A stretch of DNA of 64,000 bases from Stylophora pistillata (lineage: Eukaryota): NCBI RefSeq assembly GCF_002571385.2, contig NW_019217912.1, forward strand, positions 505,380-569,379, in the 5' to 3' direction. Below are positions 1-53,149 of the stretch, piece after piece (positions within the stretch are counted from its first letter, which is position 1; each line of letters opens with the position of its first letter). The translations under genes and the position numbers were made by a program. The notes beneath the pieces are model-generated. The model saw only the letters and a program-made list of their open reading frames with translations, ran no database searches and had not been told where the DNA came from.

Positions 1-2
1 TA

Positions 3-365
3 GAGGTTCCGCAGGCAGCGCCGCCGCAGGTGAATCCACTGCTTCTGACACCAAGGGTGTTACCAATTGGGCCCATACTTCCCATCGCATCACCTGCACC
101 TTTACCACCACCAGTGGAAGAGACTGAACCCACAGAAGTTCCACAGGCCCCTCCTCGCTTCGCACCCTTGCTTCCACCCATTTTTCCCCTGCCAGGTCCT
201 AGTATCGCACCGAATCCCGCCTTAACTGCCCCAGACAGTTTGCTACCTGAACCAGAAGATGATAAACCATCGGTGCATGTTAATGTGGAAACATCAAGAT
301 CGAGTGTTCCTGAAACGGGTCGCCACTCTAAACAGCACGCAAACAGCCCAGCCAAACGTGGCTAG
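3..365 (+). CDS. 3' end of a Pro-rich protein gene (5' part lies outside the window); probable member of the secreted-protein cluster
   Basis: Frame open from position 3 (EVPQAAPPQV...) to TAG at 365. Pro-rich; ends ...KPSVHVNVETSRSSVP...KRG*, with the RSxVP motif seen in the downstream genes. Donor GAG|GTATGA at 391 and acceptor TTCCCTCTTCAG ending 803 suggest a 3'UTR intron. Confidence 0.75.
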   Translation, partial: EVPQAAPPQVNPLLLTPRVLPIGPILPIASPAPLPPPVEETEPTEVPQAPPRFAPLLPPIFPLPGPSIAPNPALTAPDSLLPEPEDDKPSVHVNVETSRSSVPETGRHSKQHANSPAKRG

Positions 366-6209: not shown

Positions 6210-8167
6210 ATGATCAATGGGCAAAATATTACCTATTCAATCACAGCAGTTCATCACCAATCCATATTGTTGAATATTCCCACTAGTAAAAATTAAATGA
6301 ACTTCATTGGTGATGCACTGGAGTGCAAACAAACTTTTTAACTTTTTACTTTTATCTTGAAATATATCTCTTTGTGGCTGATGCACTAGCCAATATATGC
6401 ATTTTGTTTGGATTGAGTTGTTATCATTCCTTGTCAAGAATTTAAAATGCCTTTATGATTGCACCTTTTGACAGGAAAATAACCAAATAAAACTTATTTC
6501 ATAAAAAAAAAATTGTAAAACAAACAGCTTACTTAAATGCAAATAACATTCTGATAAAGACTCCCTTAAGTTTTTAAAACTGTTGCACAATGATAAATTG
6601 TCATGCCTTGCAAGCTTTTATTTTTAATTTTTCTAAAGGTACCATAAAATTCTTCTAAGAAGCCCTGAAGGGGTGAAGGGGTTGTGACAAAGATAAAAAA
6701 AAAAAACATCTTTTGCAGTAATCTTAGCAGGTTGTATATAGCAGATTGAAATGCTTCTCTGATTTACTGTTTCTAAATCAAACATTCAAATATTAAGACT
6801 AAAGGAAGGCCTGATAAAGAGATTAATTATGAGACCCTGTGTCCCTACTCACACAGTTGCATAGAAAACCATAGTCTGAAAGCTGATGTGTGCAGGGGCA
6901 GAGCAAAAAACTATCTAGTTCTGCACCCACATTACTATATAATAGCTTTGTTGCAAGGAACAAAGAAAATATTTCAAAAGGTCGTATTTTTCAATGAATG
7001 GTGAGTTTCTTGTACTGTCTTGAAAATGAAAAAAAAATTAATTGTCAAATGTTTTGTGAGCACCTATTGCATCCTATACTTAGGTTGAAAAAGAATTTTC
7101 CAGGTTTCAACACATAATGGTGATATAAAATGTTTATGTTTATTGACTGAGTTTAGTCAGGCTAGATAGGAAAATATTTTACTCTTAGACATGATGTGCA
7201 AACCTCACTGCACTTGGTTTGTGCATCATGACCTTAATTGAGCCAAATATTTCACCATATGCCCCCTCCCACACAATTAATAAGTTCGTAGTAGTACATG
7301 TTGGTGTCAGGGACTCTCCCAGTGATACATACCACAGAATTTTTAAACACTGAAGGTGTGACCCTCACCACACAACATTTCTGGCACTGAAGCTGTGCTG
7401 TTTAGAAGGTGTCATCAATGTACGTAGTCAATTGATAATTTGAATGTGTGTCAGACATGACACTTTTTCTGACCTGGGGGACAGAAAAGTGTATGGAAGC
7501 ATCATGCATTCTCCCTCGGCAGGAAAACACAACAATATAATAAAATCACAGGCCATTTCAACCACAGGTTCTCCTTTGCAAATTACAGAACCCCCTGTTT
7601 GTTTTGCAAATTACAGATTTCTCAATTTGCAAACTGTTCATATGCAGCTTAGGCAAAATTCAGCTTATTGTTTATCCTTTGTCTTTGACGTATTTCGGCG
7701 ACATGGTTGCGGACTCAAGTTCTGTAAAATACCTCTAATTCGAAATGTTTTGGGAAACGAAAGAACAGATTGGTATTACGAGCAGTTAAAGTAAAGGGTT
7801 AAAGCAGGTTCTAAATGATTAAGTCTAAAATCAGCCTACAGCAAGTCGCCGTCACAGTATCTTTATAAAATTTAACGGAAGTTTACGAAGTACTATTCGA
7901 TAGTTTTCGCCGGGTCAGAAAAATGATTTGAATTACAAATAATTTTGAAACATTTTCATATTTGAGATCAGGCTTGCACGTGGAAAGACCTTACGAGCTC
8001 TAAGAAATGTAAGCGTGTTTTTCAGCTTCTCTGAGGCCAGGAAATACTTCATTTCAATCCAAATACCTTGGATATTGTCCGTTCTGTCAAGGCAGGAGAG
8101 TATTTCCTCGAGGTCGCTGAACCAAGGGGTTTGAATTCAACGACGAAGATGGACAGGTAGAATTGTC

Positions 8168-11616: not shown

Positions 11617-12628
11617 TAACAGTAATCAAGCAAGTGAGCACAGGCCAAAATGGTGAAAACCTACCAAACGTTTCGTCGTCATTCACATGGTCTCTTTGAA
11701 CCCTGACATCCTTGAGGCAGTTATATGACAAACGTTACGCCTGTATCCTTATATGCGTCTGCCCTTGAGAGATGTTTTCTAATGAACCCCCTCTCCTCCC
11801 CCTTCATTGATAAGCTAATTATGACGGTGCAAGAGAGAAAAATAAAGATGTATGAACTTTTTTAACTTTTTACAAGACAGTGAATAATAAGAACAATATG
11901 TGTCAAAGAGGGAAGGTTTTTTTTGTGCTTACACCTGGTAAGATTTTATCGTTTTTACAAGACTGAGAGTGGTAAAGGGGGGGTGGTCAAGATCACGTTT
12001 CACGGAAAATAAATTGGTCCTTTCACAATTCACGGGAAATAACATCACTGTCGAAACTACAACCAAAATCACGGTTCACGACGAATTAAATACTTCTTTC
12101 TCATTTCACGGAGATTTATTTTGGAAAATCACAATTCACGGCTACTAATGAAATCGCGTTTCACGGGGAAAAAATAGGCCATTCACGAATCACGAAAATA
12201 CCCTTTACCATCCTCAAGACTGTCCTTTTAATTTCTACGTTAGCTTAGTCCTTTTTTTCCGCCCTGGAACAAGCTGTGTAGTGATGCATAATATCTTCGT
12301 TAAAAAAATAAGCGAACTCGCTTTTAATCGGAGGAGCAACGTTGGTTAATCTTTACTTTATTATGAGGTATCCCTGGAAAGAAAACAGCAAGACCCTCCA
12401 TCCTCATAGAGAATCTGCTTGAATACACATGACTTTCGCATTTCGCCGCTGACCTTTGATATAGTATTTCAATTTCACTTACTTGTATCACATTTTGAGT
12501 TTTTCGATTATCCGTTAGAAAACTTATTACATTTTTCGTCGAGTAATTTATTACATTTTAAGTTGAAGTTATTACGTTTTGCGCTAGTACTACATTTTGG
12601 TGCGATTATTTCATCTTGCGGCGTAAAA
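11153..12628. mobile_element. Degenerate TIR element with subterminal ATGTAATAA-type repeats
   Basis: Left end TGTTACGCCGCAAAATGTAATTATCGC matches the reverse complement of right end GCGATTATTTCATCTTGCGGCGTAAAA. Internal TGTAATA/TATTACA arrays at both ends. Confidence 0.65.
11965..12215. mobile_element. Nested MITE with TTCACG repeats and a 6-bp target-site duplication
   Basis: TIRs GAGAGTGGTAAAGGG / CCCTTTACCATCCTC; AAGACT at 11959-11964 and 12216-12221. Confidence 0.75.
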
Positions 12629-19897: not shown

Positions 19898-22800
19898 TCA
19901 CCTGGGGTACAAGTGTGTTGCAAACTGTTTCAGCAAACATTATAAGGAGCGACTTAGACTTCGAAATAAACGATTTTAGTTGTAGCTTTCTGTGGCCAGG
20001 TTCAAATCAATTTCCAGATATTACTTTGATTATTTCTATGGAATGAACTCGTACGAGATAAACTGCACCGAATTACAACTTTTAGTTCGAATATATCATG
20101 CGGTCGCACAAGGCTTGCTTAACACTGAATTCGCATCATAACAAACTATTTCAAAAATGGTGGCTAACTGAGAACTATTCGCTTACCAGGAATCCAGTTG
20201 AGCCCACTCCAAGATTCTTCAGGAAAGAATTATGACCTCGTACTATAATAAGGCCTAAAGAGAGCCACATTTTTGCTATTGTTACTCGATGAATTCAAAA
20301 TTCTTATCTCTGCAGTATCCACAAACAATTCAGTCATTCCAGTTTATCCTCTTGACCAGAATCTTTGTCCCTCAACCCTTCTGACAACTTTGCTTCTTCT
20401 GAAAATAGAAATTATGAATGTGATTAGGGAATGCTTATACTGTCTCAGAACGAAGATGCACTATCTTTTCACCTTAAAAATTTAAGTTTTACATAATTTC
20501 TTCGCACTAGAGCCCAATCGTAGAAGAAAGGTAAGACACCAAAACGTTACGAAATATAAAAGTTCAGTAAAGCAAAGGGCAACGACTTATTGAATAAGAT
20601 TCGTCACATTTCACGTGAAAAGCTAAGAAAACAGCTAGGTGGACAGTTACGAAAACTCCTCTTGTTTCCTCATGTAGTTTTTCGTCTCCGGCATGAAGAA
20701 ATATATCCTCACAAGACAACCTTTCTTAGAGATGAGAATTAAATTTTTTTTCGCGTCCTAACCGCTTTTTTTAAATACAAAACATTCACACTCGCTATGA
20801 ATAATAATTTTTAGCGCAATCTATAGCTAATTACATATGAATAAAAGAGTGGTGCGTACTGCGAATAACGATCTAAACAATTATGGACTAATTGCGATAT
20901 GCAATGGGATATTGCAACACTTCCTTAAATTCTTTATTCAAGGATTTACAAGAAGATAGCCCTGAATTTCTCTTAGAAGATGTAGAATCATAGGTTCTGC
21001 TTTTCTCGAACCTAACACCTTGATTCAAACAAGCTTCGTGTTGGAGAGGCCCTCCGACAAAGCAACCGACTCGCGTTTTGTCATTTAATCGAGACATTAC
21101 GATAAGTTTAGCTCTCTGAAGAAATTTAAAACAATATTTTCTCGGAGAAATACTCACCTCGTTTTTTTATTAACACCAGCCTGAGACTGGCTCCTGTTAC
21201 TTTTCTGTAATGGTCGAACGTCTTCTTTCCAGAGCGCAACGTTATTTTCAGTACTTCAGAAGGTACGTCTTCACTCTTGGACAGGCAATGTGGTTTGCTG
21301 CAAATTCACAATTCCTAATGAATATGGATTAGCAGTTGCAGCCAATAATTGACTGATACGTCACTGGTGCGTGGTTTGCACACTTAGGAGCCAGTAGAGA
21401 ATCAAGGGGAAAGATAAACATTGTGTGAGATGAATAGGCATGTGAGAAGATAGAAATAATTAGCGTTAACTGCACTGCGACAAGAAAAAATCAAATTGGA
21501 AAATCTTTCAAAAAATTCATTTGAAGCGTTGTGAGGCTCAAAGTCTTAGAGCTTAATTCGCACGATATCTTTATAACCCCATAATTCATTATTCATTTCC
21601 TTTATTATTGTTTTTTTTTCAATCAAAGAAAGATCGCAAAATGATAGTTTATCTTTGGAAATGATGCTTTATTTTTCCAACACTTATTTTATCAAAAGAA
21701 TTTAATAAAATAAGAGTCGCAAATTCTAATGAAATAAAAGGAAACAAAGCCTTATGTTTTCGTGGCTTTTATGAATGAAGTAATGTAGGGTAGAGTTCTA
21801 AAGGGTGAGGGAAGGTATGGAGTGTGCGGGGTATCATCGCTCGACATTCTACTCTTAGTGTTCTTTCTTTCATGTCGACGAATCCTGGGGAAACCTGGAA
21901 AATCTGAAAATCTGTGGACGTTATTACGCGAAATTCAAAAAATTAAAAAGTGATAATAGACTGATGATTGATTGAGACTTTATGCCCATACTGACATCTA
22001 ATTTCTCCCTGCAATATCATCCCTGAATCACACATTCAGGTCACAAGAATAACCGGGAAATGATCTCCAACAAACGGATTCAAAGCTCTTGATTGTTGAA
22101 CAAATTCTCCTTGTCAGCAGCTTAGGAAATGTATGAATAACAGTATTGAGAATGTACATATTGAGGGTGAGATGTAAAGGGTTGATGCCAAGCGAAAGTT
22201 TTCGATTATGACTAAACAGAACACCGGATGTATCATATCTTGGCTCGTGGAAACGTTTTCCAGTTTTACAAATAGCTCTCATCTGGAGGATTGCACTTGT
22301 TTTAGCCTTGGTGGTATTTTAGCTGATGATGTGTATCAGGTGTACATCAGTAACGAAATCTGAACCATTCAGTATCAAAACACTCGGGCTCATACCTCAA
22401 GGTGAATATCCACTCCCTTCTATAGTCAGTGAAATTGAATTAAAATAGTGAAAACGTAGCCTGAATCTAATGCGCTTCCTCCTCAACACCATCAATAACA
22501 GAAGCTTTTGGGGAAGAATCCATAGTTTTTTCGTTTCAATCCATTTGATACCAGCCTCATGAGTTTTGGATATCTATGAATGTCTAGGTTTTAGAAGACA
22601 GAAAGATGATATTTTGGTAAGACATTGTTTGCTCCTCGCAAGATAATATATTTATTGCGGTAAAGTTAAGAACATCTTTCCATCTATCAGAGAATATTCG
22701 CAACAGCTGAAATATGATTTAGAAGTGGCAAAAAATACTTTATACACTTTAATTGCTCTATAGTATGGCTATACCCCGATCTTATGCCTCTGAAATTCCA

Positions 22801-24479: not shown

Positions 24480-26060
24480 CTGAAGCGAAAGGATGAGAGA
24501 AGATTAACATCCTGATTAGAGTCAACATGTTGCAAATTTTAAGGGAGCGATTTCCTACTATGACCAGAAAAAAGAACTTAGTTGTTGAGTATCCATCTAT
24601 GTCCACACTTAGGGAAAATCACAAAACTTTGCCTTTCCTGAATCAAACGATAAATTACCGACGGTTAAACTACACGATATGTTTCATTACGATCACTATT
24701 GTCAGTATCCTCCTGTTCACCCCAAAAAAAGCCGCCCTAAGTGTCCTGCTGTTATAAAGCACTAAAAATCCTAAAGGATGAGTTCTTGCTGTCAATAATT
24801 ATTTGACTTTGAGATTCAGCGGAAGAAATTTAGTGTTCTCAGAGCAAAATATAAAATTTATAGGGTTGGTACCTGTTACTCAGTCTCTGACAGATGCTAA
24901 TATCTTTTGTTTTGCATTTATCGCGCCTCAACTTTACTTTTACCATCATAATGAATCCAATTAAAAAGCAATTTTTGGACAATTTGTTTTATGACTTTGT
25001 CCTGCCGATTTGTGAAGAAGCATGTCAGTATGTTGGTGTACCCGTAATCCCATGAAGTTAACTTAATCGTCTTTTGAAAATAAGAAAAAGGTTTGCTTTG
25101 AAAACAAATCAGATTACCTGCTTCTTTTCTCTTCATAAGATTGTCACTACAAAGCGTTTTCTATCCTCATTGTCGATTAGTGTTGTGATTCTAGGTTCGT
25201 TTTTCTAGCTTTTTTCGTTGAAATAATAAAAGCTACCTGAGGTTACCTGTAAACACTGTAAGAAAACTTCGCTTCAGTAGTCACGACTACTGCAGGAAGA
25301 ATCGTCAAAACATGAAAATTGGTTGTTTAGTCTGCAATTGTTTGGACGTAATGAGCCGTGTGAAGAATCTACTGATGTTTTGAAAGCGACTTTGTCTGGC
25401 TAAAGTTGTGCAAACAGTAGCATCTCACGCCAAATTTCTTCCTTTTATTTTTTTTACCAATGTATTTAAACGAACCTAGAAGGAAAGGTTTAAGGTGACC
25501 TTCAGATAATTTCGGGTTCATTGCAGGAAAGCTGCTGCCTTAAAACCTGTCACTATAACTTTGGTTAAATTATACTACGCATAAAACAAGGAAAATATGT
25601 CCAAGACGATAAAATCAGGAAAGGAAAGTATCGGTCCATATATTCAGTGTACTGGATGCCAAAAATAAAAAAGATTTAACACTGTAATTACATGGTAGTC
25701 ACAATGATTAAAACTACGCGTGAAAAATTTATTGAACTTTTATTTGTTCACTGATTAGCGTGACCACCATCCTTCCAGTTAGAAGAAGACTTTCGTAAGT
25801 ATACCTGCTGTTTGAGAAACAAACGCTGGTGGTTCTATTCAATTATGTGACACTGTCATAAACTCCTATTCTTCCGTGAAAAACTAATTGCCACGTGCGA
25901 TGAGATGATAAAAGATTAAATCATGGCAAGAATTCCCTCGGAGTGAAGTAATCTCCGTTTGACCACTAAGACCATCGACAGATCACTTGTGTTTTGGTTT
26001 ATTGTTCTTAAACAGAATCTAGAGGGGCCGTATTTGTTTACAAGTTTACTTTTCCCCGAC

Positions 26061-28067
26061 ATGGTGGCCTCTCGGGGATTATGGCTTTGTCTACTAGGGA
26101 TGTTATTATTTAGTTTTTCCTCTGGCGTGTTTTCAAGAGGAGTTAAAAGTAAACGAAGCCCACGCAAGAATTCCGTTCGTTACACTGTCCACGAAAAACC
26201 GCCAGAGCTGGTTGTAAATGCTGACCCCGAAGGAGTAAAAGTTCAAGCTAAGCCTTCAAAACTTCAAGTAATTGCTTACCCTCACCTACAGGGATTTCAT
26301 CCATACGAGCATACGGCAGTATTAGGTCCACATAGTCCACCAGTGAATATTGGACCAAATGCACCTCCGGTTCACATTGGACCTCATGTACCAGCTGTTC
26401 ATCTTAGTCCCAGGGTTCCAAGTCTTCACTACGGAACAAACGCTCCTCTTCTTCACGTCAGGCCTCATGTGCCTTTTGTTCATATGACGCCCCCAGTCCA
26501 CGGCATAAACGCTCTTACCGGTCCTCCAGTGCACGTTATGTCACCATCTACAGTATATCATCAACCACCGATTGTTTTTCATCAGCCACACTTTCAATAT
26601 CCTGGATACGGTGGTTTTGGTGGATTTCCAGGCTATGGAGGCTTTGGGTATGGTGGCTATGGTTGCTATGGTGGTGGACCTGGTTTCTATGGGCGCTCCA
26701 CTATACCTGAAAATGATGAAGAGGACGACGACGATGATAATAATGTTGATAACAATAACGATGGCAACGACTCTAAGAACGACGAGGGCGAAGCTCATGA
26801 ACATCGCAAGCACAAGGGAAAATCGAAGCGCGAAGTTGTTTCACAGAAAGTCAAGCGCCAGTGGTTTGGGTGGCATCCGTTCCCACATACAGTTAATGTA
26901 GGACCTCACACTCCACCCATTCACGTTGGACCTCATTATCCCCCGGTTCATATCGGGCCTCACGTCCCTGCAGTTCATATAGGACCTCATGTTCCAGTCA
27001 TAAACGTCCCATCCCATGTCCCAGCGATTCATGTACGTCCCCATGTTCCTGCTGTGCATTTAGGACCGCCTGTTCCTATCATTAATGCCGGAAACCACTT
27101 CCCAGCGGTGCATGTCACTTCTCCACCCACGATCTACCACCGTCCTCCTATTGTCATTCACCAACCTCATATCGTCCATCCTTATGGCGGATGGAAGAAA
27201 CGCTCAAAGATCGCCCAAGCTGTTAAATCTAAAAAGGAGAGTTCTACGAAGGAAGTTAAAGCAGAGGAGCAAAGCAGTGGTGATGAAGACCCAAAACAGG
27301 AAGAAGAAAAGCCACAGGAAACCCCCGCCTCCGAGCAATTCAGTGGTGAACCAGAACAAAGTAGTGGACAACCACCACATGCAGACGAGGAAAAGCAAGT
27401 CAACGTAAAATCTACCCATGAAAGAACAAGGCGACAGATGTTTTCTAATGCCAACTCCGGACCAAATGGCGACTCAGTGATATTTGTCCATCCAAATGAA
27501 CACAATGCGGCAAGTCCTGCAGGATTGGGTGACCTGGCAGGTGGCCATGGTAACCCTTTGGAAGGCGGTAACCCAGCAGAAGGGTTTGGGGATCTTTCCT
27601 CGAAGGCCTTCGGAGATGGATTTAACCCTAGTTCGTTAGCAGAGGGTGGACAAGGAGGAGAGTTGGGCGCTGGTGGTGATAGCCTTGCTGGACTCGCAGG
27701 AGCAAGCCTCGGTGGAGCAGCAGGCCTGGCTGGAAACGAAGCTCCCCCTATGGGGGCCAATAGCTTCTCTGACGCTGGAGGGCTGGGAGGTCTCGGCGGA
27801 CAAGGAGGTCTTGGTGGACAGGGAGGTCTTGGAGGACAGGGTGCTCCAGAAGAGCTTCCTGGTGGTCTTGCAGGTCTAGGTGGGGCCATGGGATCGCCAA
27901 TGGGTGGGGGTCTTGGCGGAGAAGAAGCTAGGTCGGCGGTTCCTCGCTCTAGTATCCCTGGAAGACTAAGAAAGATAACCAGAGGGTACCTCACACGAAA
28001 CCCTCTTGACAATGGAGCAAATGCTCCCATTGTCAAGAAAACGTACATTCCACGACCAGGACAATAA
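26061..28067 (+). CDS. Secreted 668-aa modular His/Pro/Gly-rich precursor (single coding exon)
   Basis: Long ORF. MVASRGLWLCLLGMLLFSFSSG is signal-peptide-like. Two 9-mer His/Pro repeat blocks, YGG/FGG and GGLGGQ tracts, acidic spacers and dibasic sites. Acceptor ending 26015 upstream; donor at 28090 downstream. Confidence 0.9.
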   Translation: MVASRGLWLCLLGMLLFSFSSGVFSRGVKSKRSPRKNSVRYTVHEKPPELVVNADPEGVKVQAKPSKLQVIAYPHLQGFHPYEHTAVLGPHSPPVNIGPNAPPVHIGPHVPAVHLSPRVPSLHYGTNAPLLHVRPHVPFVHMTPPVHGINALTGPPVHVMSPSTVYHQPPIVFHQPHFQYPGYGGFGGFPGYGGFGYGGYGCYGGGPGFYGRSTIPENDEEDDDDDNNVDNNNDGNDSKNDEGEAHEHRKHKGKSKREVVSQKVKRQWFGWHPFPHTVNVGPHTPPIHVGPHYPPVHIGPHVPAVHIGPHVPVINVPSHVPAIHVRPHVPAVHLGPPVPIINAGNHFPAVHVTSPPTIYHRPPIVIHQPHIVHPYGGWKKRSKIAQAVKSKKESSTKEVKAEEQSSGDEDPKQEEEKPQETPASEQFSGEPEQSSGQPPHADEEKQVNVKSTHERTRRQMFSNANSGPNGDSVIFVHPNEHNAASPAGLGDLAGGHGNPLEGGNPAEGFGDLSSKAFGDGFNPSSLAEGGQGGELGAGGDSLAGLAGASLGGAAGLAGNEAPPMGANSFSDAGGLGGLGGQGGLGGQGGLGGQGAPEELPGGLAGLGGAMGSPMGGGLGGEEARSAVPRSSIPGRLRKITRGYLTRNPLDNGANAPIVKKTYIPRPGQ

Positions 28068-31000
28068 CAATTCGACGCTGAATAAACAGGTAAGTGAAAG
28101 ATGTTAGCTTCAAGCAGAGCTATTCCTTGCCTATCTGTTAAAAAAGATAACAGGTCCTGGTTGCGGTTGTTGAATTTAAAAAGCTACGATTAATTTTTAC
28201 TTCTACTGTGGTTTTATTCAGCTTCCATTTCGAGTACCATCTTATGTGAATGGGTGATAAAACATTCTTATGTATCCTACTATTTTCTGCGTGATTTTTT
28301 ACTACATTCTTATCTGAAACATTTCCTTAATAATACTGCTGATGTTAGAGAAAACGATCTGAAGTAAGACTGAAACAATTGCTCTCAACAGTTGAAGAGT
28401 AACACAGCTTTTTTTTTTAAAAAAAAAAAAACCGCGCAACCGAATCCTGAAGACTAAACCAGACCATTAATGCGTGCTTTAGGACCTGTTGCACAAATTA
28501 CCGCCTATGAACTTCGATGGCAGCCTTTTCCTCTTTAAGTTAAACATTTATCAAGAAGGCGAGAATCGCTCTTTTTATGACTTTTAACAGGACTTCTCAA
28601 AGAAAATTGTTAAACCCTTTCTTAGAATTCCTCGAACGCTGTGTTGTACACGCAAACATTTGAAAATAATTTGATTAAAGGAAATAAAGAGTGGTCAGGA
28701 GGATGCAGATTTTTTGGGAGGCGGGGTAGATCTCGTCGATATGAATATGTTCTGTAAAGTGAAGCGACGAAATCACTTCACTTCAAACAAACTTGGGTAC
28801 TTTGAGTACCTTAATTATTCATCAAAAGAATTGTTCGCAATACAAAAGAAACGATGGCACTACCAAGTGAGTTGGTGCTCGATAGTACAATAGTTTCAGT
28901 TTGTTGTGCATTTATTTTTTGTTCAACTTTAACTCGCCAGCCCCATTCAGCAACGTTCTTTAATCTTTTTGTACGCTATAACGGGATTTGAATTATTTAA
29001 TCAGTTTGTAAGACCTCGTTAATTTTCGGTAGAGAACAGTCTTTGAGGATAGACCTTTTTGGAGATCTACTTTTACTGCTTCTCGATTGTAGCTTTAAAT
29101 TAGTGACCAATAACTTCATTTTGTTTGTATTTACAGAAATTGCACCATGGAAGTGCAAGCACCAGTGACCATATTTAAAGATGCTCTACGATCAAAGGAA
29201 TGATTTTATGCGATTCCAAAAGACTAAAAAAGGAATTTCCTTTCAATCCCAGCGGAATTGACTGCTGACAACTTGAATGCGAAAAGCGTCCTCGTTTGAT
29301 ATGTTCCGTATGTAGGTAGCAGGCCGTGTTGTGTCCATGAGTATGGGCAGACTACATTAGTTGGTTACTTTTCCAATGATCTCTATCCTCAAACGAAGTT
29401 ATTCATTTTGTTTTAAGCGATTGTGAAAATAAAATTGAAGATTTGTTGAGATAATTGCTTCCATTATGTGGATTACATCTGCCTGACTTGCAGACTCGTA
29501 TTCACACTTCGAGTTCCAAAAGTGATTGACTCTTACAATGTGGTTAAAACTCAATATCAAGATGACTATACGTGTATATAAAAGAAAAAGGAATTTTATG
29601 CAAAGAGGCAAAATTGCTATGAAACAAAATAAAATTCATGGAACTAAAATACATGGAAATGGAAAGTGTTCATGGGGAATTGGCAGTCAGATCCCGGGTA
29701 TTAGCGAGATGGTAATGAGAAGATCTGCCTTTTTTCTTGACTTGAGAAAAATAAAAAAAATGTATAAATAAAGGAATTGAATCATAGAAAGAGTTTTGAT
29801 TCTAATGTTAATTAATGATGGGATAACTTGGTTTCAACTGAGTTGATATTGTGGATCGGCCACATTTCGACAAAATGTTCGAACGTATCCCTTCTTTAAG
29901 ACGAACTTTGAAAATTAAACCCCTAATTGATGATAAGCCTGCCTTGAATTAGTCTTTCACTTTTGCTCACTTAAATTACACTGAGTGCCTGCACACTGGT
30001 CCCGTCAATTAATTTCTTTCAAATTTTTAGCAAAGTAGTTGGGTTTATTATGGACAAAGGGATAACAAATCAATTCTGTAGGACTACACTTGTCTGGGGC
30101 GTCGTTTACGTTTTTCACTTTACTTTGGTTACGTTCTCCTTCAGGTTGTTACATTTATGACCACTTTGAAAACTGTTTCACAACACTTGTCTGTAAAGAG
30201 TTCAGTTTCCCCTGGTTTTATGGGTGGTGTTCATCCTATACAACGGATATCCGGGCTTACGGCCGCTATCAACTGGGCGAATTTGAAAAAGGGAGGGCTG
30301 GATGTCGCAATACACCCTGAATGTATAATTGTTTTTTAACTATCTTTATCCCTTTTTGGTTGACAGTCTATCATTAATATTGGTTGTTAGTTGCTATTGT
30401 TTATTTTGTTTATTTTTGTTTTTTATGAAACGAAGACCTCGGGATAAAAGTACATTTCAATTATAATTTGGCTTATCTTCATTTAATTGTCAGTTTTTTC
30501 CCCGTACATCATGTTTGTTTACTTTGTCTTTCTCACCAGTTGGATTGTTTCGATATAGAATTCGTTGTTTGCTTTTCCACCGGTTATCTACCAAGTTAAA
30601 CACTAAGGCATTTTGTAGCATGACAGGGAAAATACTGTACAAGTAGCCAAAACAAGCAACTTAGAGCATGTTTCTATTTGAGGGGCTGCTAGTTGCATGG
30701 CACAGGAAACAAACGATAACCTACTCGAGATTGCGAAAGGCAACTTCATAAGGACATTTGCAAAGTAATCACCGAAGTTTCAAGGTAGTATGTCTCTTTG
30801 AGCTGAAGCCGTGCTAGATGTTCACTATTTTTTTCCATTTGTGTTTCTAGACCGAGTTAGAAGTTCAATTAACTTCTATTTTCATTGCATCTCATCAGCT
30901 CAGCAATCCAAGGTCTTCAATAAATCCACAATCGCAAGTTGATTTGTATAGTGTGGATGCCTCGCCCTCTTTCCGCTCCCGGTCAATTTTAAACTTTTCT

Positions 31001-31455
31001 GATTAAAGCAAGTTGTCAAAGATCTCGCTTCCCCTTTTAGCCTATTTTTGATTGACTAGGTCTGACGTTTTTTGTGCGTGAAATTCAATATTCATTTATT
31101 TCGTTTTCTTTTCTTATTGACCATATTTTGTCTCAAGTTCATAAGCGCCCCGCGTCTCGGTTTTATATGCTTATTTATATGCTTATAGGAAAGTAACGAT
31201 TGCCGTCTAAATAAATTGACATATATAACAATGATGACTGAAAAAGTGATCTGTAAAGAATTAGGCCACTTGTTGCCATTGGGGCTAAAGGCCATTTATT
31301 ATTTACCATTGACATGATCTCACCCTTGGATATCCAACGAAATATTGAAAATTAGAATTTTCTTGGTTTCGGAGTTGACATTCCCGAGAAAAATAGATAT
31401 GTTATCTTTCCTGAGGCAAGAAAACTAACAGAATTTTTCTTGCTTGTGTACAAGC

Positions 31456-34103
31456 ATGAAATGGTTTTGTTCTGCCGACGGGTTTCGTGCAACGTTATGT
31501 CTTATTTGTTTGTTGGCTTTTAATGGGAGCGTTAAACCAAAACCATTACCTGAAGGTGGAGGAACAGTGACTCAAACTGGTGAGCCGTCACATTTTCAAG
31601 TTGATGACAAAGCCGCTGAAATTGAAGTCAATGCCAACCCTGCTGGAGTAAAAGTCAACGCTAAGCCAGCCTCTCTTCAAGTTGTAGCAAAGCCGGGTGT
31701 CCCAGCTGTACCAATATTTCATCCAGCGATACATCTTGCCCAACACTATGCGCCTCCACCAGTTATTCATCACAGTGCGGCCATGTTTTATCATGACGGA
31801 TTTCACTATCCCTTCGGTCACGACTGGTTTTACAATGGAATAAAACGACATAAGTTTCCTAGACCACGGAAAGATCAAATACAAGTTCGAACGCACAAGT
31901 CTGATATTCCTCGGTCAAAACATCACAAGAAGGCCTCTCAATCTCACAAGAGACAATTTATCTCTGCGGTTCCGCAGTTTGCGCAACCATCATCCCTCGC
32001 TGCCTTTAGAGGTCTCGGTGCGCTCGGAACTTACGGATATGGAGCCTCACCTCAGTACGGTTCTCTTGTCGGTGCACCACTGGGAGTTTACGGCTTACGT
32101 CAAAATCCTCAAACAGGATTACTTTCCTCATCTCCCCAACTCACTCCTCAGCAAGGTCTACAAGAGTCGGGGATGTCAAGAGGTCTTTTGCCCTCGGAAA
32201 GTACTTCAACAGGCACAGATACAACTGACATACTGCGGAGATATCAGAGGCTTTACGGTGAACTTAATGCCCTTGCTAACATGTACAACTCGCTTGTAAG
32301 GCAAAGAAGTTTGCATTCCCTAACAGACATGGGATATGCTGGGGGAATGGGCGTTGGAGGCGCTCTCCGCATGAATACGGATGGTAGTGACCCTCGGCTC
32401 GGACAATTAGGTTTGGGAGCTCCGCGAGGCCCAGTGATGGGTTACACAAGAACTTACATCCCCTCCCCACTGGTGAAGCTTTATGGCACTCAGGCGTCAC
32501 TTCCCCAGACCAATAGCTTTCTTGGTGTACCTGGTATGTTTGCTAAAAATAGCCGTTACTGAATTACTGTTGCTTCTTGAAGCATTATATTTTGTTTTTG
32601 GATGATGAAGAATGATTTTAATATTTTGTTTTTGGATGATAAAGAATAATTTTGATATATCTAAGTCAATATTTGCAATTAAAAAATTGTCTAAAGGTTA
32701 TAAAGAGAGTTTTTGTAGGCTGAAGATTACTTTTGACTCACTGTTTCTTTTCCCAAATTTTTCCCTGTACTTGAATGCATTTATCTTATTCTTATCACAG
32801 TGGCATTAAACAAATGTGGAATGTTTTTTCGGATAGTCATAGTATATTTTCAGCCCTTTTGGTGTCATTTGCTGTTTGTGTGTGTGTGTGTGTGTGTGTG
32901 TTATTGTTGTTGTTTGTTTCCGTTGTTTCTATTTTTATGTTGGTTTTAACTAATCATTATGATCGGCGAAACCGTAAAAATTGCGTGAATAACATATTTC
33001 TCCTTTACTTTTCTGCAGGGGCGTCGTTAGTTGGGCAACCACCCATGGCCCGATATCTCGACCTTTCTTCTCTGCTGCAGGGCTCACCTGCAATGGTGAG
33101 CAGATCCAAGGTCCCTGCAGCCCCAGATAAAAAAGACAAGAAACATGATCATCAGGATGACACAATGAAAAAAGCAAAAGTGAAACGACAAGCGCTAGTT
33201 GAACCGATTTTAACCACCGAGGATCCCGACAGCATGGACGATTTATTCCAAGGTGACTATGACCAGGACTACAAGCGGCAGATGATATTAACGCCTGCCC
33301 TGGAGACGCTACAGCAACTTCAGCCACTGCAACCATTATATACTCGACAGGCCATACAGCCACAATCGTTACAGCTACGTCAACTACAGCTTCAGCCACA
33401 GATACTACCTGAGCAACCGTTAACCCGTCAGTCGCTTGCTTTGCAGGGCACCGGTATGCAACCAACGGGTATGCAGCAGCAGATTGGAATACCAGGGACT
33501 CAGCAGCTTGGTCTCCTTCCCTTGACCTCCACACCACTGCGCTACATGACGCCATCTTTGGTGACACCACTTGAATCAATGGGTTCCAGCTTTGATGGAA
33601 GATCATCAGCAGCTGGAGCAGCTTTACCGCAATCGTTCGCCTCTCAGAGTTTAGTGTCACCGTTAATTTCGGGTACGTTCACCCGTCCTAGAAGTGATTA
33701 CGGCTCTTTGCAAGATCTTTCATCCAGTAGTCTCTTTCAAGACAGGTCACAATTTCGCCGTCCCTTGAGACTTGGTTTCCCAGGCAATCCAAGACGTCTC
33801 TTCCACAGACCTCAATACCGAAGGCGATTACATAACTTTAGAGAGGAAGAAAACTTGGATGGAATGCAACCAGAAGTGTTAGGTCGTGAGAGAATCTCGC
33901 AAGAGGGATCATATTCCACTGAAGTAGTCCCAAGTTCTCAAGGAGAGACACTCATAAACTCGCCAGTGGGGTTCGGACCAATCACGGTGGAGGCTAAGAC
34001 AGCAGAAGGGGCACGGAGAGCTGCGATGGCTGGAGAAGATAAGAGACATCGCATCCACAGACCAGTTGAAAGAACGTCTAAGGGCAAGAGGAACCATCAG
34101 TAA
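31456..34103 (+). CDS. Secreted 720-aa low-complexity precursor, paralogue of 26061-28067 (join 31456-32533,33019-34103)
   Basis: Signal-peptide-like MKWFCSADGFRATLCLICLLAFNGSV. Donor CTG|GTATGT and acceptor TTTTCTGCAG| are both phase 1 and join the two ORFs in frame. 17/26 identity to the upstream gene in EIEVNANPAGVKVNAKPASLQVVAKP. Confidence 0.88.
32877..32900 (+). repeat. (TG)n microsatellite in the intron
   Basis: About 12 TG units. Confidence 0.9.
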
Positions 34104-35808: not shown

Positions 35809-36409
35809 CAGGTTCTTATGCTACTTTTACTCTTCTAATGTTTAAACCAATCGCCCGAAAATCTCACCAGATATCTAAGGCACAAGAAGATATAAAGTTA
35901 ACATCTGGCACTATAAAACCGAGCAGCGAGAATCTCCGACAGAGAGTAAGTCCGCTACAATACTTTTGGATCTTTTCTAGGTTATTGCTTAGGGAAACGA
36001 ATAATCCCTTTACCTACAACGACTGAAGTTCATTTTTGATAAACGTTCGTAAGATATCAAACACGGAGGAGAATTTATTTGTGTCGCACGTCTTCTATAG
36101 GCAACGTTCTCTTAAGACTATTATTGTATGTGCGTGCAAATGATTTTGCGCACCTGGAATAAGCATATTGTTTACACAAGTGTTTCGAGAAGAGTGTTTG
36201 ATAAACAAAGGTAGAGCACCGCGAGGTGTTTCGTTAAAACTAATAAGAATCAAGATGGAAAACGAGTTTAAAAAAAAAGTGTGAACATTTTGCAATCATC
36301 TTACCCTCCTTGATTAACAGTTTGCTTATTACCTTCTTTTGCCGCTTTATTGCATCGAAGAGTGATGTTCAAAATAAAATTAATTGACAGGTTATTAGAG
36401 GAAGCCAAC

Positions 36410-37879
36410 ATGCCACGAGGACACTCAGTGGGAGATGCTCACTCCAACAACAGAGCGCGGAGTTTACGATCGGCCTGTTCTAGAGCCTCTAGTACAATAA
36501 AGCAAGTAGATTCTACCCTTGCCCTTGTGCGGTCAGACGAAAGGGTCCTCGAGGAAGATGAAACGCAGTCCTTCACTAGCTCTCACTGGGATACAGACCT
36601 CGAGGACGATGATTTCTCTGATAGCGAAGGAGATGAAGTTACTCCCGATAAGGAAACATACCTGAACTTGTGTGACTCGTTGGGAGTCATTCCCGTGACT
36701 CGATTTGGGAACGAGATCGGCCACGAGGAGATCAAGATTAACCATCGCTTTTTGAGGGAAATGGGGACAAAGGCCATTGCCTCCGTCCTGTTAGGTAACA
36801 AAACAACCTCCAAGCTACACATTGCGTCTAACGAGCTCAATATCAAAGGAGGAATTTATATGGGACAACTTCTGTCAAAGAACAGAGCTCTTACTGAGCT
36901 GAACTTGGCCGACAACAACATCAGGCGAGAAGCTATTGCCGCCATAGCAGAAGCTTTGCCGAGTAACACGGTTATTAGAAAGTTAGATTTGTCTGGAAAC
37001 GGTCTTGGGGACAAAGACGCTGAATTATTGGCCGAGGGAATTGAAAACAATAGGTCTCTTCATTGTTTGAAGCTTAGCTACAACAAGTTTTCTGAAGAGT
37101 CTGGTGTTTCTCTTGGAACTGCACTTACATATAACAATTCGCTTCTCGAGCTTAACTTAAGCTGGAATCATATTCGAAGAAGAGGAGCTGAGGCTATTTC
37201 GAAGAGTCTGAGGTATAACAACTCGCTGGAAAAGCTTGATCTCTCTTGGAATGGATTTGATGACAATGGAACTGCGGAACTTGGGGAGTCCTTAAAACGA
37301 AACTCGGCGCTCAGAGAACTCAACCTAAGCCACAATCGAATCTCGGACGAGGGAATAAAAAACATTGCGAAAGGTCTTGAGGGGAGTGAGAGCCTGGAAG
37401 TGCTAATACTCAATCATAATTTGATCTTCAATGCTTGTCAGGGAATTAATAAGCTGTTGGAAATGCTGTATAAGAATGGCGCCCCTGCGCTGAAAATCCT
37501 GGCGATTTTAGACGTAAAGCTCGATCATGATTGTGAAACTCTGCTAGCAAAAGTTTTAGAAAATCGATCAGGGCTGACTGTACATCATGGATGTAAAAAG
37601 TCCGACTGTTTCGTATCCAAAAAGAGAGAGACTAATCCATTTGACTTCCTGAAAATATATTTGGACAAAAACAAGATTCACGCGTCTGATTTGTTTAAAC
37701 GCTTGGATCCCGACTGCCAATTTCGCGATAGCTTGTCTCGAGTGGAGTTCGTCGATGGAATGAAGCGTTTGAAGGTAATGAGTGACTTCTACCTTGATAA
37801 ACTTGTGGAACTTCTTGACGAGGATGGAGATGGCGAGATCGATTACAGCGAATTTGTCAAGATGCCTCAGTCTATGTAA
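36410..37879 (+). CDS. LRRC74: LRRC74-like protein, 489 aa: RI-type 28-aa LRRs plus C-terminal EF-hand pair; intronless CDS
   Basis: WDTDLE and YLNLCDSLGVIP N-terminal motifs, ~9 LxxLxLSxN repeats at 28-aa spacing, canonical EF loop DEDGDGEIDYSE. Confidence 0.85.
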   Translation: MPRGHSVGDAHSNNRARSLRSACSRASSTIKQVDSTLALVRSDERVLEEDETQSFTSSHWDTDLEDDDFSDSEGDEVTPDKETYLNLCDSLGVIPVTRFGNEIGHEEIKINHRFLREMGTKAIASVLLGNKTTSKLHIASNELNIKGGIYMGQLLSKNRALTELNLADNNIRREAIAAIAEALPSNTVIRKLDLSGNGLGDKDAELLAEGIENNRSLHCLKLSYNKFSEESGVSLGTALTYNNSLLELNLSWNHIRRRGAEAISKSLRYNNSLEKLDLSWNGFDDNGTAELGESLKRNSALRELNLSHNRISDEGIKNIAKGLEGSESLEVLILNHNLIFNACQGINKLLEMLYKNGAPALKILAILDVKLDHDCETLLAKVLENRSGLTVHHGCKKSDCFVSKKRETNPFDFLKIYLDKNKIHASDLFKRLDPDCQFRDSLSRVEFVDGMKRLKVMSDFYLDKLVELLDEDGDGEIDYSEFVKMPQSM

Positions 37880-43719: not shown

Positions 43720-46700
43720 TTAAGAAGAAACCTCGTCATCTTCTGTAAAGGGAATAAAAATAAATAGGTATATAAGAATGATTGAATGACATCAAAGTGT
43801 ACTATAACTAATAATCTGTTCATTTTAAGCGAAAAACAAAGTTAACTTGCTTTGAATGGTTGTCTCTCTTAAAGATCTGAATTCTGCCACAGTTTGACGT
43901 TTCTGCAGCTGCTTTGTTTTTTTTCTTTTTCCTTGTATTCTCGCCCCGGCCCGATCTTCGAAAGGATCCAGGTCCTCTATCTGAAAGCAAGAGAGCAATC
44001 AAGATGAAAATTATCCAGAGATTATAAACATAATCTCTTGTACAACTACATCTACTACTGAACCGAAGTCACACTCAGCTTATGTGCGTTTGTGTCCCTT
44101 TTTCAAGGCTAATGATGAAAAACATGATAATTCAAATTTGGACGAAAATTTTGCCTTAGATCAGGCTAAGTAGGTTATCCATTCACTTGCCAAGGTATCA
44201 TGACTCTAAACATCTATAGATCATTCAAGCTGTGCTGTAGCGATGGTCAATGGTCATGAATACCTGTTTTGGTTTGTGCAGATTAATGAAGAACTGCATA
44301 TCTCCAGCTCCGTGTACTGACACCTTACCAATAAAATCAGGAAGCTTTGTAGGATCACTGAGCCTAAATTTCAAATAGAAATCAACAAACGTCGTTTTTC
44401 CCGTGAAAATGACAATTCGCTCATCGGTACGGTCGGCGGCATCCATGTCAGGTACAAAGCTCCCGCGCACAAGGAATCGAGTATTACCAAGAGGTAAGGT
44501 CAGCGGCTGCGAGCAGACCTCAGAAATGAAGCAATTGTCGGGATTTCTTGGTTGAGCATTGTCAAAGAGTGCCACTCTCAAAACAAACTGTTTCCCAGGC
44601 TCTGCAATCTCGGTCATAAGGCCTCGAAGCGATGTAGTAACGAAGTTGTTGTTGTCGTTGTCGGAGTAATGGAGTTCTCTTGAAATACAGCCTGCAATTT
44701 GCTCAACGTAGCGTGGGTTGTTGTTAGGTATTCGTCGAACAAGCTTATAAAGTCCTCCTCTTGTGATTAGAAATGAAGCAATCTTCAAACCGTTTGCAGC
44801 AGTTTTAATCTTGAGTAAAGTTTAAAATGAATTAAATTAGCTTTATGTGTATCAACAATCATAATGATAAATGGAACCGTTAATAATTCGTTACTAGTCT
44901 TAAACATAATGAAACATAACATAGTCAGGCTATCATGGCGAAGCTTTTTTACATTACAGTGGCTAGAAGTAAGACGATGCACTCAAACCAAAAAGAAAAA
45001 ATACTTAATAACCTCTCGAACCACATAAGAGATGAAAAGAGACGAGTCTTACCTCGGGTGTGCTGTAATGGTGCTTCCATAAAACCAAATCCTCATCTAA
45101 AACTTTGCTCTGCAAAACAGCTACCCTAGCGTTCTCCCTGGAAAAGAAATCTTCAAACCCATCTCCCAACAAGGGTAGGGTTAGTTGAATAGGCTTCGTG
45201 AAACGAAACTTTGACGGGCGAATGAGAACAACCGGGCTGGATGTAACATCCACCAAATTGCTTTCGTCATGATGCCTTGGATCACAGTTCTGAGGGAGAA
45301 TCCACGTGCTGTGTGACTTAGAGGAAGTTGGGGCCGGAGCTGATAGACTGTACAACTCATCTGTGCAAACTGTCTCTAATGTTACAGGAGTCTTACGGGA
45401 CACACAGCCAGCGGGGAACTTGATCTGAATTCCTGGATATTCCGTTAGCTCCACCTCACAGTCAGTGTACGGATCCAGATTTTTCGTTGACTGGGGATGC
45501 TGAGTCATTTTTATCGTAAACAATCCGCTTTTCCTGCATATGATTCTTGCCTCAGTTCTTGCTGCATTAACATGAAAGCAAAATGAGTCAATGGGTTTCC
45601 ATTTGAGATGCTTCACACCATGTCTCGCCCAGACATTGCTGCAATAAAGGCAGACCAGTTGTCCACAAGATTTTGGAGCCACACAGTTCGGCAGCCTTAA
45701 TATAAGTTCGGCAGAAGGTTCGAACACAAACTCCTTTGGATAAATTTGAATTATATCTGATACTCTCCGCTCGTTTTCTTCCAAAAATGGCTCATATTGA
45801 AGTTTGTTGATAATTCTGAACTTCACACTTGTTGTCTTTGAACTATGTACTGAAATGACAGAAGTCTTTAGTTTTACACCAAGAAAATCGTGTGATGCCT
45901 CTGCAAATCCATTCTTTCCAATTCTTATTCTGACCCAGTCACTAGAAACGGTGCTGAAAGTGAAAGTGTCAATCAATAAATCATTATCAGTTATCTTGAG
46001 AAAGAGACTTTGTTCATAACGTCATCTCTTTCTTCCCTTCACTGAGACAAAGCGATTTATTTCATTCAAGTATAACTAAAACAGTACGAGAAAAGTGATC
46101 CAGACGCGAAATATCGTTCAATTCTGAAAGAATGTGAGGAAATTGATGACAAATGAAAACATTCATACGAGGACGGTCTCTCATTATCGCGGCGCGCAAT
46201 GTAAATAAGTTGTTCTGTTTGAATTTCTATGAGCTTTTGAATGAAGAGCAGTAACCCTTAGCTCTGGACATAAACATTTCGCATTTTCTTTCATATATTC
46301 GTTGTTTAATCGTATTTATTATTTTTTTTTTAAGTATTTAGTTTTTTTCGTCAAAAAATCACATGATAACGCGAACTCTAGTCATGTTGCCAAATGTGCG
46401 ATTTAAATTCAAATTTCTGTCTGTTGTATCTGACACCTGCCAAGGCTTCCGGAGTATCTCTTGATTTTAGACTTGTCTCCTCGCGGTTAAACCGAACGCC
46501 ACTTTGCCAAAACGAAATACATTGACACAAAATTGGATCATTTATAACGCATTGCTCAAAAAATGATTTTCACATTTGTACTGATTAAAATTTTCGTCGC
46601 CAGCGAAACGAAACGAAGTGCCTCACTTCGTTTACCGGAACTGTTTTTTCAACCTCCTTTTCTTCATTGTTGCATTTAGGTTAGTTTCATATGAAAATTA

Positions 46701-52592: not shown

Positions 52593-53149
52593 CTAACAAA
52601 GAATAAAACAAAACTTGTTAACATAATTACACAACTGCCACAGTTAAGATATATCAAGAATTAAGTGACGATCTCTGTAAGAGCGGTCCGGGGCGTTTTG
52701 CTTCGGAACAAAGTTTTCCCTCAAACTTTACCAATTAAACTATCTTTGGTAGTAAGTAAATAAAACCGCATTGGTTTTCGGAAACATGTTAAAAAAGAGC
52801 TCTCAACAATCACAGCTGCAAAAAACCCTTTTTTGACCTCTTGCGACATCGAAAGTTTCCAAAGTTGACAAGCTCGCTCCTCGTAACAAACTGCATGCAG
52901 CAAAATATCGTTTGTACCACTAAGCTATGTGATATTCAATGGGGTTTGAAACGCATTTCAATTTTGACATGTGTTTATTTAGAGGTTCACAATAATTTAA
53001 TTACAAACTTTCCTTAGACAGCTTTCTGAAATTGGTCAAAAGTACTCTTCTTTCTCGGTTGATATTTCTCAAGTCCACCCCAGACCATTAAAACCTCTGA
53101 TTGACTTTTTCTAATAAGATGTTCGAAGGCACAGAAATATAAAAACATC

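Follow-up and report, generated by a model that had tools for sequence, protein, structure and literature searches.

Tandem genes for modular, nearly cysteine-free putative secreted precursors in Stylophora pistillata: a cnidarian-restricted family with a possible role in a structural material

Spinalin, a Gly/His protein of ~24 kDa, belongs to the spines of Hydra nematocysts. Secreted structures of cnidarians contain minicollagens, NOWA, cnidoin, spinalin and nematogalectins, but what else they are made of is known only in part. Minicollagens, cnidoin and NOWA, all of the capsule wall, are joined via cysteine-rich domains, the cnidoin repeat QMQGCGQQXP having minicollagen cysteine-rich domains on both sides (PMC4321713); the same source states that nematocyst proteins of diverse kinds retain a propeptide ending in Lys-Arg. 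Direct orthologues of spinalin were not found in Nematostella (PMC9205923). Here we analyse 64,000 nucleotides (nt) of the coral Stylophora pistillata (contig NW_019217912.1, positions 505,380 to 569,379 of the forward strand; hereafter the window, numbered from its first letter), which hold two complete genes, gene 1 and gene 2, and the 3' end of a giant third. Domain-based surveys are blind to a family of the kind that these genes represent.

We propose, with a probability of about one half, that they belong to a cnidarian-restricted family of secreted, nearly Cys-free modular precursors that would be processed by convertases into a non-covalent structural material. The case for a material is indirect and draws on several traits: bulk-type repetition, with 18 domains in one gene, a Cys-free design that pairs beta-type with Gly/Tyr-rich segments, blocks of silk-like composition, high expression and extreme conservation.

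The genes and their family

A sequence-only reading of the window had singled out two adjacent same-strand genes of 668 and 720 amino acids (aa) with signal-like N-termini, almost no Cys in the mature part and modules of distinct composition, and these claims hold. Both genes are backed by open frames and by RNA contigs and reads, and gene 2 by a confirmed intron. The best 10-residue Kyte-Doolittle windows of the two N-termini score 2.6 (gene 1) and 2.9 (gene 2), each followed by a small-residue site; orthologues of gene 2 are alike in this, and those of gene 1 all have the same type of leader. Cysteine is confined to the leader (C10 in gene 1; C5, C15 and C18 in gene 2) except for C202 of gene 1, and the mature proteins, with one and no Cys respectively, therefore have no disulfide capacity. 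The modules are rich in His/Pro, Gly/Tyr/Phe and Gly/Ala/Leu(/Gln), with acidic spacers, in gene 1, and in Gln/Leu/Pro in gene 2. The parts of gene 1 are as follows:

26061..28067, + strand: gene 1 coding sequence, a single exon of 668 aa plus stop, with which eight orthologues align end to end
26061..26135, + strand: signal-like leader (aa 1-25), hydrophobic core with small residues at -3/-1
26184..26285, + strand: N-terminal family motif (N-motif; aa 42-75), the first units of a 9-residue register
26286..26708, + strand: His/Pro domain 1 leading into a Gly/Tyr/Phe block (aa 76-216), closer YGRSTIP at its end
26709..26858, + strand: acidic/basic spacer 1, isoelectric point (pI) 4.5, ending ..KVKR before Gln267
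26859..27194, + strand: His/Pro domain 2 (aa 267-378), ~8 nonamers and after them heptads, between KR-Gln and W-KKR
27195..27434, + strand: acidic spacer 2, ending ..RTRR before Gln459
27435..27929, + strand: module 3 (aa 459-623), with ..GDSVIFVHP as its conserved head and a silk-like Gly/Ala/Leu/Gln region after it
27930..28067, + strand: basic tail and stop, with three [KR]-S/T-x-[IV]-P motifs
28090..29136, + strand: intron of the 3' untranslated region (3'UTR), 1047 nt, GT..AG, starting 22 nt past the stop
29137..29760, + strand: terminal 3'UTR exon; RNA ends at ~29700-29760, with contig ends at 29729 and 29759 and read starts at 29697-29729

The gene 1 frame runs uninterrupted from the ATG at 26061 to the stop at 28065-28067. 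An RNA contig spans it from ~26040 onward, poly(A) RNA-seq contigs contain ~0.9 of its sampled words, and it is abundant in adult poly(A) RNA, with contig word depths of 142 and 572 and a raw depth of 100-280 (run X23). In the stranded raw reads nearly all first mates map to the - strand, which places the RNA on the + strand. Two antisense open reading frames (ORFs), 27182-28048 and 32950-33660, were dismissed as mirror images of the biased coding strand, the stranded reads backing the + strand only. The 3'UTR intron of gene 1 is supported by two contigs (X1, X2), by 224+8 raw reads of run X23 and by 20 reads of X24, and its terminal exon has poly(A) signals at 29628 and 29750. Single-base differences across RNA runs occur in this 3'UTR (29472, 29685, 29712 and others; both A>G and A>T at 29472) and in gene 2; they look like allelic or strain variation rather than editing. 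Within the coding sequence, the acidic spacers have a pI of 4.5-4.8, and module 3, with 53 Gly, 22 Ala and 18 Leu and a pI of 4.1, contains an 18-nt tandem repeat at 27776-27841.

Gene 2 is coded by 31456-32533 and 33019-34103, 720 codons joined in phase 1:

31420..32533, + strand: gene 2 exon 1, 5' untranslated region from ~31420, ATG at 31456, aa 1-359 plus one base
31576..31698, + strand: gene 2 N-motif (aa 41-81), four predicted 7-residue beta-strands with 2-residue turns
32534..33018, + strand: gene 2 intron, 485 nt, GT..AG, phase 1, seen in an X1 RNA contig and three raw reads
33019..34103, + strand: gene 2 exon 2, with KR-Gln starts KVKRQ and DYKRQ, Gln/Leu/Pro and Arg-rich regions, and the conserved terminal motif ..GFGPITVEAKTAEGAR..

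Its N-motif is followed by a short His/Pro/aromatic stretch and then by three KR-Gln starts with Gly/Tyr/Ser, Gln/Leu/Pro and Arg-rich blocks, up to the ..GFGPITVEAKTAEGAR.. end. We searched the two exons separately, used the orthologue region for the homologue search and kept the joined frame for counts only. No RNA read or contig links gene 1 with gene 2, among contigs and raw reads on 28000-33999, and the ratio of their depths, ~10-30:1 for gene 1 to gene 2, is roughly constant in three runs; this ratio is the one hint of the co-regulation put forward in the sequence-only reading. No promoter words common to the giant gene, gene 1 and gene 2 were found. Repetitive sequence in the intron of gene 2 comprises 2.1 tandem copies of a 34-bp unit and a (TG)14 microsatellite, at 32579-32658 and 32873-32901. 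The X1 RNA contig of gene 2, at ~31420, has 30 extra 5' letters that are missing from the window. A spliced leader was considered for these and rejected: they are a dispersed repeat with three genomic copies (C94:19333-19362, C130:649676-649705, C546:8943-8972), and a GT donor afterwards is absent. The contig is probably chimeric.

Only the last part of the third gene lies inside the window:

1..365, + strand: 3' end of the giant paralogue, the last 121 codons plus stop of a frame that runs from window position -18720 to 365

Its reading frame begins 18.7 kb ahead of the window and has 6,360 codons, ~6,244 of them from the likely start Met. There the leader and start are shared by an orthologue fragment (P0048), which begins at the same Met; P0083/P0105 are further fragments. 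The N-motif is followed by 18 His/Pro domains, which keep a strict 7-residue period (His autocorrelation 0.83), and then by ~17 modules that open with KR-Gln-hydrophobic, many of them closing with a strand of the type ..P-R-V-S-V-N-V-E-T-A-K-S-S-I-P... The frame is interrupted by one in-frame TAG, at -5781..-5779 in a charged spacer between two His/Pro domains; this may reflect a very small intron, a polymorphism or a mistake in the assembly, or it may be a genuine stop codon that makes two genes of the frame. One N is present between 365 and 26061.

A search of the coral's own genome for the N-motif returned exactly four places: three in the cluster (giant gene, gene 1, gene 2) and one outside it on contig 35, at 825582-825701 on the - strand (L015 ORF 877..1728, - strand). 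This fourth member, of 283 aa, has a leader, an N-motif 45% identical to that of gene 2, an RKSEV-type end and, by eye, an apparent second, degenerate copy of the N-motif. The 34-residue N-motif of gene 1 is homologous to that of gene 2, and a leader followed by the motif, defined as h-x-V-[DEH]-[DE]-K .. [LI]-x-[VI]-N-A .. G-V-K-V-x-A-K-P-x-x-L-Q-V-[VI], was found in gene 1, gene 2, the giant gene, the contig-35 paralogue and the coral and anemone orthologues. Moreover, by tblastn, gene 2 exon 1 and the N-terminal part of the giant gene match the same stretch of the gene 2 locus of the anemone Actinostola (53% identity over 151 aa and 45% over 100 aa, respectively), and the His/Pro profile also matches giant-orthologue proteins (P0083, in 30 stretches, and a gene on the metagenome contig L016). 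Judged by these shared parts, gene 1, gene 2 and the giant gene are paralogues. The cluster order is giant, gene 1, gene 2, and at least one further paralogue lies on another contig.

The arrangement recurs elsewhere, as a tBLASTn and microsynteny check proposed with the sequence-only reading bears out. In Actinostola, orthologues of gene 1 and gene 2 stand in tandem, each with its own leader, at 20882-22570 and 25323-28346 of JAUJYZ010001473; the NCBI model KAK3703953 (962 aa) wrongly merges them, skipping the signal peptide of gene 2. In another hexacoral (L016), the giant orthologue and, 2.9 kb beyond its end, the gene 1 orthologue share one strand, with GT donors 3 and 22 nt past the two stops (7141-7170, 11774-11785). 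The gene ending at 365 had been credited with the same orientation, terminal motif and 3'UTR intron as its neighbours: it does share their strand and has a related C-terminal motif (..VNVETSRSSVP..), while the intron is proven by RNA in gene 1 only, the giant gene having a candidate GT donor 25 nt past its stop. Sequence inspection gave no obvious splice donor just past the stop of gene 2. An intron after the stop may be a conserved trait of the family, too near the stop to trigger nonsense-mediated decay.

Searches for described relatives gave little. Pfam (gene 1, both exons of gene 2 and the giant end) returned no family at E<=1 save one chance-level match; PDB sequence profiles gave no true match, the apparent ones being artefacts (the Spt5 Pro-rich repeat, and His-tags aligning with a poly-His part of the alignment); and the protein atlas gave no usable match, one being at chance level (0.77). 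The His/Pro profile, run against 1.84 billion representatives, found 47 proteins, of which the convincing relatives are gene-1-type proteins of corals and anemones and a protein of the scyphozoan Rhopilema esculentum. In the latter (266 aa; LOC135690154, gene5305) a leader is accompanied by KRRQ and a Gly/His-rich block, and its His/Pro domain is 52% identical to domain 1 of gene 1 (E 8e-26); a homologue search with the scyphozoan protein P0054 returned only itself. Divergent full-length proteins of the gene 1 type from Tara reef metagenomes (P0007, P0008, P0053) have Gly/His blocks and some Cys, and their domain 1, 66% identical to that of the jellyfish protein, is nearer to it than to this coral's. 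Matches in fluke, fish, frog, sea urchin and others (P0055-P0061 and beyond) were treated as chance low-complexity matches; P0058 and P0061 were the two read and are unrelated simple repeats, and the rest were taken to be alike.

Every named relative, including a Montipora 'uncharacterized protein' among the gene 2 orthologues, is annotated 'uncharacterized' or 'hypothetical'. The literature gave nothing naming the family under the Nematostella orthologue LOC5512467 (XP_048578595), family peptides, spirocyte or histidine-rich proteins, the matrisome or the coral skeletal matrix. The earlier suggestion of a family with no named counterpart thus stands, the genes being paralogues by their N-motif and the searches returning only cnidarian 'uncharacterized' proteins as convincing relatives. 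As far as its sequences tell, the family is cnidarian-restricted and unnamed, and spans Anthozoa and Scyphozoa.

Module boundaries and the His/Pro repeat

We defined the family's modules as opening with [KR]R-Gln-hydrophobic and closing with [KR]-S/T-x-[IV]-P, and both marks are enriched over shuffled sequences and invariant in orthologues. Gln follows 23 of the 102 dibasic [KR]R sites in the three proteins, as against ~6 expected; shuffles reached the observed count in 5/2000, 15/2000 and 0/2000 trials, the last figure being that of the giant protein. Closers of the form [KR]-[ST]-x-[IV]-P number 4 in gene 1, with 0.08 expected, and 9 in the giant gene, with 1.5 expected. Formally these closers also fit the SxIP microtubule-tip motif, which we dismissed since the family proteins carry signal peptides.

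Conservation follows the same boundaries. R266-Q267 and R458-Q459, the starts of two gene 1 modules, are invariant in eight orthologues, as are G470-P478 at the head of module 3; R212, S213 and I215 of the gene 1 closer YGRSTIP do not vary in the orthologues either. More generally, YGRSxIP in gene 1 and HKSDIPR in gene 2 are invariant, and the KRQ sites of gene 2 are kept, together with the HKSDIPR closer, in Montipora-cluster and other orthologues. By contrast, the spacers that precede R-Q in gene 1 range from a few residues to ~50, and their sequence is not common among orthologues. Invariant boundaries around variable spacers are the pattern expected if modules are excised and spacers discarded. 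The sequence-only reading had these proteins cut into several building blocks; that idea gains support from the enrichment and invariance of [KR]R-Gln and the conservation of the closers, and it is from these that we infer the cleavage itself.

Among the most conserved parts of gene 1 is His/Pro domain 2, whose 112 residues include 26 Pro, 19 His and 18 Val and no acidic residue; Lys and Arg, too, are nearly absent from the His/Pro domains. It is made of nonamers of the form G-P-H-x-P-x-V-H-I, with a period-9 autocorrelation of 0.36-0.45 for His, Pro and Val/Ile/Leu. Stylophora and Actinostola share 106 of 112 residues, although change at fourfold-degenerate sites is near saturation, with differences at 46 of 62; 93 of 105 residues are identical in a more distant relative (L011), and in Nematostella 4 of 112 positions differ, as read from the alignment. 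These comparisons point to extreme purifying selection, as strong as is usual for assembly proteins. The repeat is thus held at a level usual for histones or cytoskeletal proteins, with a known fold, cysteines and annotation all absent.

The 9-residue register begins in the N-motif of gene 1, where V43, H44, E45, P47, P48, E49 and L50 are invariant in the eight-orthologue alignment, and continues unshifted through at least 11 further units into the His/Pro domain. In gene 2, coral and anemone orthologues agree throughout residues 41-68 and 70-81 of the N-motif and have Asn or Ile at residue 69. AlphaFold2, given 22 family sequences, modelled this motif as four 7-residue strands with 2-residue turns and a core predicted local distance difference test (pLDDT) score of 89-96, a confident in silico model of an antiparallel, four-stranded beta-meander. 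Foldseek found no match to the model at E<=0.001, the best E-value being 1.0, and a three-copy prediction of the N-motif scored 0.01, which gives no answer and is neutral on binding. The earlier statement that these proteins contain no recognisable globular domain therefore stands in part: Pfam finds none, but the N-motif is modelled as a beta-meander, and the His/Pro domain is highly conserved and not drifting low-complexity sequence.

What the modules may form

The proposed route to a material is as follows. The precursors would enter the secretory pathway via their N-terminal signal peptide, and convertases of the furin/PC (proprotein convertase) type would then cut after dibasic pairs; each new N-terminal Gln may cyclise to pyroglutamate, while the charged spacers would be discarded or would serve as solubilising pro-pieces. 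The pieces so released would be His/Pro beta-type blocks (~110-140 aa, some bearing a Gly/Tyr tail and some not), a silk-like block of Gly/Ala/Leu/Gln and blocks of Gln/Leu/Pro composition, and these polypeptides would assemble without disulfides into a suckerin- or silk-like proteinaceous material. Several observations weigh against this proposal. Gln is missing after many of the [KR]R sites, so that not every dibasic pair need be cut; the monomer of His/Pro domain 2 was modelled by AlphaFold2 (six sequences) with a low-confidence pLDDT of 39; ~95% conservation over more than 100 residues would also suit a ligand or a domain that binds a partner; and the cysteine-rich domains of the capsule wall are absent from the anthozoan family members. 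The last point argues against a component of that wall, and not against spines, tubule contents or matrix.

If there is such a material, we give the cnidocyst (spines, shaft or tubule, or matrix) rather less than even odds as its site, the remainder falling to a secreted layer of another kind, for instance mucus, mesoglea, cuticle or adhesive. Few hard protein structures are common to corals, anemones and jellyfish, which speaks for the cnidocyst, as does the restriction of the family to Cnidaria and its presence in both Anthozoa and Scyphozoa. On this tentative view, which is a sub-case of the material proposal, the proteins would be delivered to the growing post-Golgi capsule and cut there at Lys-Arg, and their His-rich beta modules would harden, as the Gly/His-rich spinalin is thought to do in Hydra spines. 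The scyphozoan and P0007-type members do carry Gly/His-rich blocks beside the His/Pro domain, module 3 of gene 1 is Gly/Gln/Leu silk-like with a composition as in cnidoin, and nematocyst proteins are described as typically having pro-pieces that end in KR (PMC4321713). Against it stand the lack of a minicollagen-type cysteine-rich domain and of almost all Cys, and a scyphozoan member at odds with a role in spirocysts only. The presence of the His/Pro domain in a scyphozoan jellyfish lowers the likelihood of such a spirocyst-only role, since scyphozoans, to our knowledge, have no spirocysts. We also looked for a tie between the Nematostella 'spinalin-like/fibroin-like' v1g243188, whose knock-down disturbs barbs (PMC9205923), and the orthologue P0006, and found none: translated in any frame, the primer and short hairpin RNA sequences of v1g243188 yield no P0006 peptide, though a location in the UTR is possible.

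A Cys-free modular design rich in His, Tyr, Gly and Gln resembles that of adhesive and cuticular proteins, and the abundance of gene 1 in adult poly(A) RNA would suit epithelial or gland cells that make mucus, mesoglea, a cuticle or surface coat, an adhesive of the pedal disc or larva or, in corals, the organic sheet below the calicoblast. Domain-based matrisome surveys would overlook a family without a known domain (PMC12549020). We regard such a layer as possible yet doubtful; a role specific to the coral skeleton we reject, and one specific to calcification is unlikely, the family being present in anemones and a jellyfish.

Two further explanations dispense with a material built of excised blocks. 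Dibasic-Gln grammar, with acidic spacers beside basic modules, is found in prohormone and antimicrobial precursors too, and the conservation of domain 2 could reflect receptor binding, so that KR cleavage might release diffusible bioactive polypeptides with a pyroglutamate N-terminus, such as His/Pro-rich antimicrobial or hormone-like ligands. This seems improbable: the modules, at 50-165 aa, are not short; no Gly precedes the dibasic site as an amidation signal, domain 2 ending in W-KKR; blocks of the Gly/Ala/Leu and Gln/Leu kind typify materials; and a gene of 6,240 codons with 18 near-copies points to production in bulk. Antimicrobial peptides, moreover, usually evolve fast, and domain 2 is ~95% fixed. 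Alternatively, the proteins might be secreted unprocessed and work as full-length multi-module chains, KRQ and the closers serving glycosylation, sorting or cross-links. Ser with Pro at +3 is a good context for mucin-type O-glycosylation, the [KR]R sites that lack Gln are numerous, and cleavage of the family proteins is read from their primary structure. But invariant R-Q falls exactly at the borders between conserved modules and hypervariable spacers, as would be expected of excised spacers, and we consider this explanation unlikely.

Within the proposal of a processed material, a bolder version would make the His/Pro nonamer array, in register with the beta-meander, a new self-assembling beta-repeat fold with stacked His ladders that bind metal or switch with pH; once excised from the polyproteins, the array would supply the hard or the adhesive protein phase in a structure peculiar to cnidarians (e.g. 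cnidocyst spines or tubule). It would account for ~95% of residues having been frozen since the coral/anemone split, and if true would provide a histidine counterpart to the calcium-binding nonapeptide beta-roll; we hold it to be quite unlikely. Should the pieces form a material of any kind, they would offer new Cys-free, histidine-based designs and a missing component of the cnidocyst or another surface; should they form none, the extreme constraint on a 'low-complexity' secreted domain would still want explanation.

The surrounding window and comparison with known systems

Beyond the cluster, a single-frame ORF of 509 aa at 36350-37879 (+ strand) has, from its translation, leucine-rich (RNI-type) repeats and an EF-hand-like C-terminal end, and appears unrelated to the three genes. 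Further downstream, the ORFs at 44225-45976 (- strand), 53014-53562 (- strand), 59254-59844 (- strand) and 62827-63246 (+ strand) were judged from their translations to include a possible ZU5/death-type exon pair, an OTU-like protease and mobile-element fragments of reverse-transcriptase-like and endonuclease-like type.

Among cnidarian systems, spinalin is like the family in being secreted and histidine-rich, and Gly/His blocks occur in the relatives P0001 (GGFHGG repeats), P0007 and P0054; His is absent from the Gly block of gene 1, and a His/Pro nonamer domain, an N-motif and a multi-module precursor are not mentioned in descriptions of spinalin, to which this comparison is confined. Cnidoin offers a signal peptide, a Lys-Arg-ended pro-piece, silk-like Gly/Gln-rich repeats and spontaneous self-assembly (PMC4321713). 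Gene 1 differs in having repeats of the GGLGGQG type, without the GXGQQ motif, Met/Cys richness or cysteine-rich domain; it has ..SKR at aa 30-32 past its leader, the position of which is not kept among orthologues, whereas the internal KR/RR-Gln sites are. Minicollagens, likewise lineage-restricted secreted structural proteins of cnidarians, share a KR-ended propeptide and proline-rich stretches, but a Gly-X-Y run is absent from genes 1 and 2, whose Gly-rich parts read GGF/GYG and GGLGGQ, and neither has an N- or C-terminal cysteine-rich domain.

Precursors of prohormones and antimicrobial polyproteins resemble the family in their signal peptide, dibasic-bounded repeated units, Gln at the new N-terminus and charged spacers; the units of the family differ in being 50-165 aa long, of low complexity and far more conserved, and, compared with cnidarian neuropeptide precursors, its modules are long and lack Gly-[KR][KR] at their ends. 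In the RTX beta-roll, as in the His/Pro array, a repeat of strictly 9 residues combines a turn that contains Gly with a short hydrophobic strand; in the array, however, GGxGxDxUx and the calcium-binding Asp are replaced by His/Pro, and the N-motif, for its part, is modelled as an antiparallel meander and not a roll. In suckerins and silks, a Cys-free, beta-forming, His-containing module flanked by Pro alternates with a Gly/Tyr-rich one and assembly is non-covalent. No sequence relation to them was found, and they are not cut from polyproteins; on paper, by analogy, the modular design of the family would work alike. The protein family is new and unnamed; the kind of system is already known.

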